Of a DNA stretch of 64,000 nucleotides, positions 22,976 to 64,000 are shown piece after piece (position 1 is the stretch's first letter; each line of letters opens with the position of its first letter). The notes under the pieces were generated by a model. That model had not been told where the DNA came from and ran no database searches. It saw only the letters and a program-made list of their open reading frames with translations. Location of the stretch: positions 62,001-126,000 of the forward strand of contig JALMLS010000156.1 of the NCBI GenBank assembly GCA_038496445.1. The letters run 5' to 3'. A program made the position numbers and the translations under genes. This DNA comes from Trichosphaerium sp. ATCC 40318 (taxonomy: Eukaryota; Protista; Tubulinea).

Positions 22976-24365
22976 TTAAGTTGATTTTATGTTGTATCTC
23001 CATTTCTTCGAACCATCCCATCCAATATGTTCACATACTGCTCCAGAAGTAATCGACTGTACAATGATACCGTGCTTTCCTCGTATTTGAAGCTTCGAGA
23101 AATGTGTGCTCATTCCGACACCTAAGCTATCTATACATGTTTCCCATATGGTGTTACCTGCTATGTCAACTAGCTTCACACCCACATCGCTCTCATCCAT
23201 CATTGGATGCATCACCAATAAAATACAACCATTGGAAAAATGATAATCAAATGCAACAAATCCTGTCATTATTTTAGTCTTCCACACTAGAGTAAATATA
23301 TTGTTGTCTTCTTTATACTTGTGCATAAATTCATTACTTGTTATAAACAAATAATCACCTTGAGCGGCGACATGGCGCACATTGTGATACAACTTACTAA
23401 CTTCTTTTCCAGTTTGAATATCAAGGACTACAGTATTTTCTGCTGTTCTATCCGAACCATAAACAAACTTATCCTTTACAGAAATCATACTTGGTGATTC
23501 CCCTGGAGGATACAAGTGTATCATATCCTTGGTCCACAACATAGAACCTAAGAGAACAATCTATCAATGAAACAAAAGGCAACAATGAAAAAAGAAAGAA
23601 AAAACTTTCACAGTTTAACTGAATAAGGATCTGTCGTACCATCCTTAATATTCACAGCATGCATACACCTCGTTTTTAAATCCATAGCTCTACTCCTATC
23701 TATCAAAATCATGATAGCGTTTTGATCGCAATTTTGAAGGTAAACGTCAATTGAACTTGTAAAGCCTTTTAACTCAATACTCCACACTTTTTGTTTGGTT
23801 TTTTTACAAAACCCAGCGTATGAATGTATTCCTCTATCCAGGAGAATATCACCGCAATAATCTAGCCTACCTTGATTTGTAATTTCTCTCCACATATCAC
23901 GATCAATGTCAGGTTGGGTATGATAGTGATAATCCATCGAAAGAGGTGGCGATTTGATCGCTTCTCCTGTTTTGATATTTAAGATCTTTTCAAACTTAAC
24001 TCCCCTCATATACCATACTACTCTGCATTGACTCTAAAATCACGTGCTTAGCAACTAAAGCACGTGGGTCATAATTAAAGGAGACTTACCCGATATTGTT
24101 CCTCCAAATGACGCGCAAAACAGAGGTATTGTAATCCATCAAAGTTGGATATATCAACTCCAAGTTTTGGTGGCCATTCGCACATTGGACCGTAAAACAA
24201 AGGATTGTCCCATTTCGCTTTAAATAACTGTTTCGCTCCCTTTGGAGAACATATTATATTACGTGCTCTCTTGTGACTGCTTGAGAATGCTATGATCGCT
24301 GTAAAACTACTTGTTTGCTCCATAACCGCCAAAAGGGTTTCTGGAAGGTTGAATACTGTCTCCAT
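22976..24365 (-). CDS. F-box-like N-terminus + PQQ/WD-like beta-propeller protein (3 exons)
   Basis: FNLPETLLAVMEQTSSFTAIIAFSSSHKRARNII; repeated motifs LNIKTGE, KVWS, LDIQTGKE, GNTIWE, DGSKKWRY. Confidence 0.55.
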
Positions 24366-24846: not shown

Positions 24847-26610
24847 TCATAAAATAGTATTCACTTTTTTATCAGCCTTGAAATAGCGATGATAAAATAA
24901 GTTACCGCTTATATTCCACTGTTTGAATTCACCTTCTTGTAAACCTTGCTTGAAATTGCCTTGTAGGCTTATCTGACCGTTGTTGTGCCACTGCTTGAGT
25001 TCACCTTCTCGTTTGTCATCTTTAAAATGACATTGCAGGCTTAATTGACCGTTGTCATGCCACTCCTTGAATTCACCTTCTTTTTTATCATCTTTGTAAT
25101 GACCTTGACCGCTTAATTGACCATTGTCATACCACCGTTTGAGTTCACCTTCTTTTTTACCATCTTTGAAATGACTTTGAACGCTTAATTGACCGTTGTC
25201 ATGCCACTCTTTGAGCTCGCCTTCTTTTTTACCTTCTTTGAAATAACATTGGCTTAATTGACCATTGTCATACCACTGTTTGCATTCACCCTCAAGCATG
25301 TTGTTTTTGTAGCTATGGAAATGCTGTTGGCTTCCATCTTCATTCCATAACTTACTAACACCTTCTTTCATACCATCTTTGTAAAATAAGTGGATCTGTA
25401 AATTACCGTTTTGATACCACACTGCATTTTCACCTTCATACATGTCTTGTTTAAAATGTCCTTGACACTTTAATTGACCATTATCATACCACTCCTTGTA
25501 TTCGCCCTCTTTTTTGCCGTCTTTGAAATGATAATGCAGAAACAATTGACCATTGCCATACCACTGTTTGACCTCACCTTCTCTTTTACCATCTTTGAAA
25601 TGACCGTGAATGCTTAATTGACCATTGTCGTGCCACTCTTTGAGTTCACCTTCTTTTTTACCTTCTTTGAAATAACTTTGAATGCTTAATTGGCCGTTGT
25701 CATACCACTCTTTGTTTTCACCCTCTTTTTTGTCCTCTTTGTAATGGCATTGTACTCTTAATTGACCATTGTCATACCACTCTTTGTGTTCACCGTCACA
25801 CATGTCTTCTTTTAAAAGGCATTGTATGAATATTTGGCCATTGTCGCGCCACTCTTTGTATTCGCCCACTTTTTTGTCATCCTTGTAATGACATTGTATG
25901 AATAATTGACCATTGTCACGCCACTCTTTGTATTCACCGTCACACATGTCTTCTTTGTAATGACATTGTATGAATAATTGTCCGTTGTCATGCCATTTTT
26001 TGTATCCACCCTCTCGTTTATCGTCCTTACAATGCCATCTTACACTAAGAATACCATTTTTATGCCAATACTTGCCTTCCCCTTGTATTCGTTTATGATC
26101 ATCTAAGTAATATTGCCCTGACAACTGAACATTCTCATAAAACTCTTCGAACAATCCTTTCTTGTCTCCTCTTAAGTATAGCCGCATTTTAACCTTTTTG
26201 CTGTTTTCATAAAACTCCTAAAAAAACCGTTTTGGTAAAAAAAACACGTGACCAGTTTAAATTATACCAAAAAACGTAATTTTATCTCCGAGATGCAAAG
26301 TGGGTTACGTACCTCCTGTATATCTTGTGTAGGTATAAAATTACCAGCGTCAGTTGAGTAGAATCGCAAAGGAGAACGCAATACCATCGCGCTTGCAGTA
26401 TTTACTATGTGACGGCAATGTAATGAACCACACAATTGTAATATTTTAGACTCGCATATTCTAGGCTTGTACTGTGATTGTCGTATCGCAACGTTAGGTA
26501 TTTTATAGCTGCTAATTATCTTAGGACACCTACTAACCGTAACACATCCTAAAAACGGTGAGATACAGGCAAGCTCATTTTCTTTGTCTATTGTACGTAC
26601 GTAGCAACAT
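24847..26610 (-). CDS. MORN-variant (YwqK-like) repeat protein with predicted mitochondrial presequence
   Basis: Two upstream exons (ATG 26610; GTACGT donors; AG acceptors near 26549 and 26218) join in frame to the 446-aa ORF. The N-terminus MLLRCVTVSRCPK...LRSPLRFYSTD is followed by about 17 repeats of EGExKEWxDNGQLxxQxxFKDGKK. Confidence 0.85.
24860..26085 (-). repeat. Coding 72-bp tandem repeat array (about 17 units)
   Basis: 24-aa periodicity; near-identical DNA blocks, e.g. about 25186-25248 vs about 25615-25677. Confidence 0.92.
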
Positions 26611-27197: not shown

Positions 27198-27719
27198 TTA
27201 CAGTACATTGTTAATTTCATTGGTTTGCGTTATGACAAGTAAAAATAGTATCAAGAAAACAAGGATTGTTGTTAGACAGTAACTCCAACATCTACCACTT
27301 CTTCGTTCAAGTCTGATTCTGTCTATTTTCTGGTCTAAATCATACAACATGCACTTAATTAGAACGTTGTTCCTCTCCTCGGGTTCTACCTTTCTCTGCT
27401 TAAGAACCAAAGGGTTAAAAATACCTGGAACAAAGATACAAAGTAAATCAGATGGCTGATGCATCGTAACAGTTGGTTTTTCCCTCTGAAGAAGCCTCTC
27501 CACAAGTTTAATGCTCCAAGCGTCTGTTTCTGTTGCAACAGAAAAAACGCTGCCATTTCTAATAGCTTCAACAATGAGAGTATTCTATGCGAACAGCAAA
27601 TCAGTAAAGTGTATGGCAAATAAGATACATACACCCGTGAAAATTAAGGTTATAATGTAGCCATCTCTCAAGTATTTAGTAATAATCAGTTCATTAGAGT
27701 AGTCTTCTTCTTCTGACAT
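27198..27719 (-). CDS. Uncharacterised tail-anchored membrane protein (2 exons)
   Basis: MSEEEDYS..IFTG spliced to NTLIVEAI..; short coiled coil, then C-terminal TM LTTILVFLILFLLVI. Confidence 0.55.
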
Positions 27720-37608: not shown

Positions 37609-38311
37609 TTGTGGTAATAATGAGAAGTTTTTTTGTACTTTTTCTTTTTTTGTTAAGGAGCACGTTTCACTAAGCGTCAACTTTGATTGTTACGAAATAT
37701 CTATCGACAACTACATGTAGCAATCTATTACTTTTATTCTTAAACATGTTACCTACCTGGACTTAATTTTTATATAAACAGCCATTTAGAATAGAATGCA
37801 CAATTATAAAATGCTTCGCTTTATTTTGTCTACAGTGCACAGTCTTTAATTTGGACTAGAAGCGTAGATATTACTTGTGAAGTATTTTATTCTTAATTGA
37901 TGAAAGTGCAAAAGTGTTAGAGCGATACACAGAACTGACAAACTAAAAACAAGCTTGTAGGAATCACGCGTCAATGCACACAACAGCGTCACACAGCTTT
38001 TTTGGTGTTACGGGGTACAAAATTCGCGGCCTTTATTATTCGGGTAATTAATACAACAATAATCCTTGCTTGAGCCTTTACGAAACAAGAAGCTATAAAA
38101 AAACCGGTTTGTCAGGTTTGAAAGTTTTTAAATTTATCACGTGCTTTTTTTCTGGTTTCGAAAAAAAAATCTGTTGGAGTTAAACTTAGAAACGCTACGA
38201 CTCAGTCACACAGAACTAGAAGCGTTGAAAAACATAACGTACATAGCTCTCTTACTCAAGGGATTAGATAGTTGCCTTGCTAAGAAAGCTATAAAGAAAA
38301 ATAACCAAGAA

Positions 38312-38863
38312 ATGAGCGTATCTCCTAGAGAAAGGTGTACTCAAACATGTCCTTTCCTTTCTCTGCCTTTAGAACTTCATTATGCAATATTTACAATGAC
38401 AAAAGAGACATACGCACGTTGGCCTACGCTATGCGTTCAAACAGCTATTACAAGTAGATATAACGACAATTTGGAAAAACACGGCCGTTTCGTCAGGTAC
38501 GTACCATTCATACACGGATTCAGTCAAAGACGCTATCATAATGACAAGGAAGACGGTCCACATAAGATTTGGTTTAAAAACGGGCAACTACGCGAACTGA
38601 GATACTTCAAAAACGGCGTTCTAGAGGGTGAGAGAACACTATGGCATTATAATGGAGTTATTAGAGAGAAGAGTAATACAAAGAATGGTGTATTGGATGG
38701 AGAGTACCAAAGATGGTATAGGAACGGGACACTAAAGGAACAAGGATATATGAAACGTGGTTTAAAGAATGGAGTGTTTAAACTGTGGGATAGCTATGGT
38801 AACTTGAAATATGAAAGAGTCTTTAAGGATGGGAAGAAACAGAGTCAATCACTTAGTTTGTAA
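38312..38863 (+). CDS. F-box-like + MORN-variant repeat protein, intronless
   Basis: FLSLPLELHYAIF F-box start; 4-5 repeats such as EDGPHKIWFKNGQLRELRYFKNG. Confidence 0.8.
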   Translation: MSVSPRERCTQTCPFLSLPLELHYAIFTMTKETYARWPTLCVQTAITSRYNDNLEKHGRFVRYVPFIHGFSQRRYHNDKEDGPHKIWFKNGQLRELRYFKNGVLEGERTLWHYNGVIREKSNTKNGVLDGEYQRWYRNGTLKEQGYMKRGLKNGVFKLWDSYGNLKYERVFKDGKKQSQSLSL

Positions 38864-63446: not shown

Positions 63447-64000
63447 ATATAGTAATAATAGTACCATCAGGAGCCCATTCCTGTACTTCTCCTTTGAAGA
63501 ATCCATCATTCACAACACCTGATGTACATAGCTGGCATTCTCATACCACTCTTTTACCATGCCATGCGGTCTAACGTCGAAGAATGTATGCTCGCTCTTC
63601 TTTTTACCATTTGTATGGTATTTTGTCTCGATGGCGCGACGCTTACCTTGCCACATGAACCTTTTAACAGAGCTAGTTGACCATCGAATACCAAGCTTTA
63701 CAAATACCTTCCCGTAAACCGCCTTTGAACAGACATTCTTCTCCAAGTTGTCCGTTCTCACACCACTGTTTATACTCTCCTTCTATTTCCCATTTTTATG
63801 ACATGTACGAGTATTCAACTGACCGCTCTCGTAAAACTGTTTGTGTTCGCGTTCCTCTTTATCATTTTCAAAAAAGATTGAACCTTTAATTGCCATTGTT
63901 GTGATATGTTTTGAACACACTGTTGCGCTTATTATTTTTACACGAGCATGCAGTACTTATTCTACCATTATCGTGCCATTTGTACCATACAGATTTGTTT
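63447..64000 (-). pseudogene. Frameshifted MORN-variant repeat gene (5' end beyond window)
   Basis: Repeats KWHDNGR, KQFYESGQL, EGEYKQWCENGQL, PHGMVKEWYEN and GEVQEWAPDG lie in different frames with stops. Confidence 0.75.

Follow-up and report, generated by a model that had tools for sequence, protein, structure and literature searches.

MORN_2 arrays constitute a large and functionally unexplained repeat family common to amoebae, their giant viruses, and bacteria. To our knowledge, the label YwqK antitoxin is given to any MORN_2 protein. The bacterial members, which comprise YwqK-annotated proteins and the Leptospira LIC20035 adhesin model, occur in secreted, adhesin, or immunity contexts, none of which was found at the amoeba locus described here. 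MORN2-domain proteins of Fusobacterium are also among these bacterial MORN_2 proteins (PMC4222103). The MORN proteins of Orpheovirus, Marseillevirus, Pithovirus, and Klosneuvirinae are grouped with the giant-virus-type relatives, which consist of a head and MORN_2. We analyzed a MORN_2 gene on the minus strand of a 64-kb stretch of DNA, which was analyzed as a whole and is referred to as the window. This copy appears to be cellular and intron-bearing, with a head unlike the usual F-box or DUF5758.

Locus and candidate gene structure

The open reading frame list contains an ATG-initiated ORF of 446 codons on the minus strand (24847-26187). The frame of this ORF is open 5′ of ATG 26187 as far as 26217. 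The TAG at 26220-26218 is the stop that closes the exon-3 frame upstream and, at the same time, provides the AG of the proposed T-rich acceptor (...TTTTTTTTAG). The first-pass annotation of this DNA had proposed two upstream exons missed by the ORF list, with junctions at about 26600/26549 and 26312/26218, and splice signals were located within 1-2 bases of these figures. The features are as follows.

26601..26610 (-), candidate exon 1: ATG plus 7 bases, encoding M L L, with the last base opening an Arg codon
26549..26600 (-), candidate intron 1: 52 nt, GTACGT...CTCAC...TTTTTAG
26313..26548 (-), candidate exon 2: 78 in-frame codons, orphan basic Cys/Ser/Ile-rich leader
26218..26312 (-), candidate intron 2: 95 nt, GTACGTAA...CACGTG...T-run...TAG
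24847..26217 (-), exon 3: 456 codons plus stop, entire MORN_2 array, 19 beta-hairpins
24868..26088 (-), 17 clear 72-nt units (one of 69 nt)

Both candidate introns begin with the identical donor hexamer GTACGT. The donor following exon 1 starts at 26600 in phase 1, matching the exon-2 frame; the acceptor AG of intron 1 is at 26550-26549, and CTCAC is placed 12 nt ahead of the TTTTTAG acceptor. The donor of intron 2 starts at 26312, in phase 0 with the acceptor AG at 26219-26218. GTACGT is present 32-33 times per strand in the 64-kb window against approximately 13 expected from base composition, an enrichment of approximately 2.5-fold, and this genome may favor GTACG(T) as a splice donor. The count of GTAAGT in the window equaled expectation. 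In length and donor, as well as in having a T-rich acceptor and a CACGTG inside, intron 2 resembles the two introns implied between ORF fragments of the neighbor gene (22976-24365). CACGTG itself was counted 48 times on each strand of the 64 kb (approximately 7 expected from base composition), often within short introns; its sites include 26253-26248 in intron 2, 24706-24701 located 3′ of the gene, and a pair near 24060-24030 within an intron of the neighbor gene.

The predicted product of the full model is approximately 538 residues, with a leader of approximately 82 residues. An internal ATG within exon 2 (26387-26385, MVLRSPLRFYSTD...) is an alternative start. GC content is uniform throughout the window and, judging from this uniformity, the spliced neighbors, and the introns predicted in the gene itself, the locus is cellular and resident. 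The whole array is located on a single 1.37-kb exon and the head on separate small exons, an arrangement compatible with the acquisition of a 5′ exon by a foreign-type or retroposed array. Upstream, the ORF 27198-27503 (-) terminates right after a hydrophobic stretch and resembles a tail-anchored C-terminal exon belonging to an upstream gene. The position of this ORF leaves approximately 590 nt for the promoter of the MORN gene.

Repeat array and predicted fold

Exon 3 matched Pfam MORN_2 (PF07661) with 176.8 bits (cut-off 29.6; E 8e-55), and Tandem Repeats Finder reported periods of 72, 144, and 216 nt. Approximately 17 tandem 24-aa repeats had been claimed previously. We found 17 clear 24-residue units (one of 23 aa), W-anchored at exon-3 residues 51 to 434, and two degenerate units N-terminal to them. 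The units fit the scaffold G-x4-W-x2-N-G-Q-L-x5-[YF]-K-x-G-K, which recurs approximately every 23-24 residues.

The structure of exon 3 was predicted by AlphaFold2 using a 35-sequence alignment. The model was all-beta with a pLDDT of 94.2 and contained 38 strands, corresponding to 19 hairpins. In each unit, the DSSP string assigned strand B to columns 14-21, a turn to columns 22-23, strand A to columns 24-8, and a loop to columns 9-13. Thus, the earlier identification of the array as a MORN variant was supported by both the Pfam match and the all-beta model. No solved MORN_2 structure was matched by sequence, the sole match being a weak one to the SET7/9 N-domain. The top Foldseek matches in the PDB, Rhs/teneurin shells, were rejected because their TM of approximately 0.1 reflects generic hairpin likeness and not homology.

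Nucleotide identity among the units ranged from 40 to 90% with a mean of 66%. The closest pairs were units 7/13 (90%) and 6/12 (87%), indicating an old block duplication. Judging from the mean identity, the best pair, and silent sites near saturation, the repeat units are old.

Variation among the repeat units

The residue variants listed in the first-pass annotation were all present in the array. After GE, Y/H/N/L/V/F/C were found together with G and S; after W, H/R/Y were found together with N; after GQL, FIQC, RVQC, SIQS, SIHG, FLHY, KCQG, SVQS, SGQG, and SLQC were found. These positions had been interpreted as a hypervariable recognition code.

In the 17 units, G3, W8, G12, and K21 were invariant, and the columns of highest entropy were 5, 18, 16, 1, and 7. 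An HMM of the array units was used to collect two comparison sets: 493 units from other database matches, mostly bacterial, and 36 giant-virus-like units. The per-column entropy of the array correlated with that of both sets (rho 0.76 and 0.80, respectively). The entropy profile is therefore the family-wide profile, and the variable columns belong to the MORN_2 scaffold and are not specific to this gene.

We estimated dN/dS from five independent close unit pairs; over all pairs, silent sites were near saturation. The five most variable columns showed a dN/dS of approximately 0.8, indistinguishable from the silent rate (Fisher p 0.69), whereas all other columns, which form the scaffold, showed 0.13. 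These values indicate relaxed constraint, not diversifying selection, and divergence at the variable columns is neutral-like. The purifying selection on the scaffold (0.13) indicates that the gene is maintained.

The faces of the sheet were assigned by strand alternation along the DSSP string, without model coordinates. Inferred face 1 consists of columns 2, 4, 6, 8, 13, 15, 17, 19, 21, and 24 with a mean entropy of 0.95, and inferred face 2 consists of columns 1, 3, 5, 7, 14, 16, 18, and 20 with a mean entropy of 1.85 (Mann-Whitney p 0.02). Variable residues thus probably line one sheet face. A conserved face opposite a free face is expected of any single-layer sheet with a structural ladder.

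The hypervariable code was not supported, as entropy follows the family profile and the variable columns diverge at the silent rate. The analogy with PPR and TALE proteins was also not supported, since the fold is all-beta and the variable columns lack diversifying selection. Retaining a recognition code for this array would call for evidence of selection or binding.

Leader encoded by candidate exon 2

The leader was translated as in the first-pass annotation, including the segment LRSPLRFYSTD. We searched for homologues of the leader in several ways. Pfam was empty even at E ≤ 10, and the NCBIfam, PADLOC, and Atlas searches gave no match. A phmmer search of 1.84 billion proteins yielded no accepted homologue. 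Its sole match, P0121, is a 282-residue database entry with five copies of a 56-residue unit and is probably a translated satellite repeat. This match was rejected as chance: four copies of approximately 27 bits each inflate the score, and the E-value of 1e-7 against the leader is misleading. The exact 30-mer of exon 2 was absent from the metagenome contigs searched, and the 44 related loci searched by tblastn with the leader yielded matches at E ≥ 1 only. A weak match immediately 5′ of the MORN array in locus L005 was dismissed on inspection. The leader showed no similarity to the head of the MORN_2 paralogue in the window. A degenerate F-box, suggested by hydrophobic spacing by eye, was rejected as it had neither profile nor pairwise support. 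The single-sequence AlphaFold2 model of the leader had a pLDDT of 33 and no helix. The codon usage of exon 2 gave the same score as random stop-free null segments, and its coding status was not marked by this measure.

We evaluated the possibility that the leader is a cleavable mitochondrial presequence with an MPP/Icp55 site in R-F-Y-S (cleavage between Y and S), and that the array is a modular reader in mitochondria whose variable positions spell a code. The first 35 residues of exon 2 contain 7 basic residues and 1 acidic residue. R-F-Y-S at exon-2 residues 61-64 fits the MPP/Icp55-type motif R-x-[FYL]-[SA]. Both candidate N-termini, MLLR... and MVLRSPLRFYS..., are presequence-like by sequence, and the leader is predicted to be unstructured; the location of most variable columns on one inferred face also agrees with a reader. 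However, against a null of 86 spurious ATG ORFs taken from this window, the net charge of the first 35 residues and the motif were each found in approximately 8% of the ORFs, and the maximal hydrophobic moment was ordinary, being equaled by 22-28%. The leader is also rich in Cys (6.4% vs. a null mean of 2.6%) and poor in Ala, with prolines scattered along its length. We therefore consider it doubtful that the leader is a mitochondrial presequence. The combination of a presequence with a code-reading array is unlikely, since the variable columns are those of the whole family and show no positive selection. In an extended form of this idea, gain of a 5′ exon would have given a giant-virus- or bacterial-type MORN_2 array a true mitochondrial presequence, with the variable face recognizing mitochondrial targets; this is quite improbable. 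If the head were a mitochondrial presequence, the gene would clearly exemplify how a repeat protein of foreign type is redirected to an organelle by the gain of an exon.

Alternatively, the upstream exons may be non-coding, with translation starting at ATG 26187 to give a headless cytosolic MORN_2 protein of 446 residues. This is the sole model that does not need splicing, and it agrees with the codon usage of exon 2 and with the orphan nature of the leader. The sequence around the proposed exon 2/3 junction argues against it. EFYEN, located at the start of exon 3 and 5′ of ATG 26187, recurs exactly 24 residues on, and EFYEN and five more in-frame residues 5′ of this ATG belong to a repeat unit. 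The C-terminal D-I-Q-E of exon 2 provides the first strand that repeat unit -1 lacks in exon 3 (its counterpart in the following unit is G-L-F-E) and completes this unit at the exact 24-residue period. Thus, the repeat period spans the proposed junction. In addition, the exon-2 frame is free of stops from 26621 to 26265 (119 codons) and is in phase with the GTACGT donor; open stretches of at least 120 codons hold just 3.7% of codon positions in the whole window. The repeat period over the junction, the 119-codon frame, and the neighbor-like splice signals support a coding function for the upstream exon 26548-26313, and a headless protein appears improbable. Of the two exons proposed to have been missed, exon 2 is plausibly coding; the 10-base exon 1 is in phase, and its assignment as the first exon of the gene is a guess. 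The gene probably has a three-exon structure.

Relatives of the array

A word-indexed protein search with the array gave 2,561 matches. Most were of Bacteroidota type, labeled YwqK antitoxin, with 25-45% identity. The top identities (54-57%) were found in short proteins in which MORN_2 is preceded by a head of DUF5758 or F-box-like type. The array units were 50-54% identical to the units of the DUF5758/F-box + MORN_2 proteins, which were 52% identical among themselves, and this identity was higher than that to the remaining matches (p 1e-4). The contigs encoding two of the relatives, P0106 and P0114, are AT-rich, gene-dense, and intronless, and also carry DUF5757, DUF5850, HMG-box, and topoisomerase IB genes together with tandem paralogues, a genomic context that appears giant-virus-like. 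In a Foldseek search against viral models, Marseillevirus LCMAC102 gave the best match (2e-36), and the leading matches also included Orpheovirus, Pithovirus, and Klosneuvirinae MORN proteins. The kinship with YwqK-annotated bacterial proteins and giant-virus proteins noticed earlier is thus borne out by sequence matches and by viral models. A viral contig scan with exon 3 gave no pattern match.

Related arrays were found behind other short heads at 40 metagenomic loci, and the leader was present in none of them. Tandem sets of two or three MORN_2 genes are present on giant-virus-like metagenomic contigs (L005, 164-3469; L003, 4057-6008). These tandem genes share short conserved heads, such as M-x-S-L-L-E-E-L...K-I-L-P-L-K-I-L, or DUF5758. 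An unnamed head of approximately 50 residues (...Y-N-S-P-E-Y...I-A-N-I-V-E-E-Y-I-Y...) precedes MORN_2 in L006-L008, L015, L016, L018, and L021, which are AT-rich metagenomic contigs.

Two further MORN_2 loci are located within the 64 kb, at 38360-38851 (+) and 63516-63981 (-), from which the MORN_2 family is judged to be expanded in this genome. The paralogue at 38141-38863 (+) matched Pfam MORN_2 with 4.8e-13, and its array (38360-38851) appears intact. Its N-terminus contains an F-box-looking stretch, L-S-L-P-L-E-L-H-Y-A-I-F; no Pfam F-box model matched this paralogue at E ≤ 10. The array at 63516-63981 (-), at the edge of the window, is MORN_2-like and has in-frame stops and frame changes so that several frames are needed to read it. 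It is probably a decaying paralogue.

An antitoxin, immunity, or defense function, as suggested by the YwqK-family antitoxin label of many bacterial matches and the label "Antitoxin" of a Pithovirus relative, is very improbable, because PADLOC gave no match, the sole NCBIfam match was an adhesin model far under its cut-off (116 vs. 250 bits), and the flanking ORFs contained no Pfam domain, either of a toxin (YwqJ/LXG-type) or of any other kind, the neighbors being spliced eukaryotic ORFs.

Proposed function and comparison with known systems

On balance, we favor the explanation that this locus is a spliced gene of a "head + MORN_2 array" family, in which the array is a protein-binding scaffold and the head has been swapped, with splicing, start codon, partner, and location all predicted. 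The gene would be a resident nuclear gene of an amoeba-like protist, encoding a protein of the length given above with an unstructured, basic, orphan leader followed by 19 MORN_2 hairpins. According to the prediction, these hairpins join into a single long antiparallel meander sheet, which would be a rod of approximately 18 nm if 38 strands are spaced at 4.8 Å. The gene would belong to a multigene family of the type "variable head + MORN_2 array", which has expanded both in this genome and in giant viruses that infect protists. The most likely mechanism is that the array serves as a rigid protein-binding scaffold. One face would present the conserved ladder E2, E4, K6, W8 / Q13, Q17, K21, K24, and the opposite face would be under relaxed constraint. 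The head may set the destination or the coupling partner of the scaffold; in this gene it would have been swapped and placed on its own exon or exons. Against this explanation, the leader has no homologue, no predicted structure, and no codon usage above random.

The unusual head supports the idea that the MORN_2 array is a general-purpose scaffold re-aimed through head swaps. On present evidence, this is an ordinary gene within an expanded family.

The closest known systems are the giant-virus-type DUF5758/F-box + MORN_2 proteins (P0095, P0099, P0106, and P0114; metagenomic), which share E4, K6, Q17, and C18 with the amoeba array at 50-57% identity. Both have a 24-residue period, a head-plus-array layout, and a multigene family. 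The amoeba gene differs from them in its orphan basic leader in place of an F-box or DUF5758 head, in its predicted spliceosomal introns and cellular neighbors, and in array length, with 19 hairpins compared with 4-8 in the closest matches. The bacterial MORN_2 proteins share PF07661 and the common scaffold with the amoeba array. Their units, at 25-45% identity, favor R17, G18, and N19, with columns 4 and 6 being variable. Canonical MORN1 proteins of Plasmodium, Toxoplasma, and Trypanosoma (6t4d, 6t69, and 6t4r) share the extended beta-hairpin sheet, with a target-normalized TM of 0.45-0.60. However, canonical MORN is another Pfam family, and exon 3 had no PF02493 match at E ≤ 0.01. The array resembles TALE and PPR proteins only in its general plan, in which tandem units keep a constant scaffold and vary at a few positions. 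TALE and PPR proteins are built from helical repeats, and their nucleotide codes and specificity residues have been proven, whereas the amoeba array consists of beta-hairpins with neutral variable positions.
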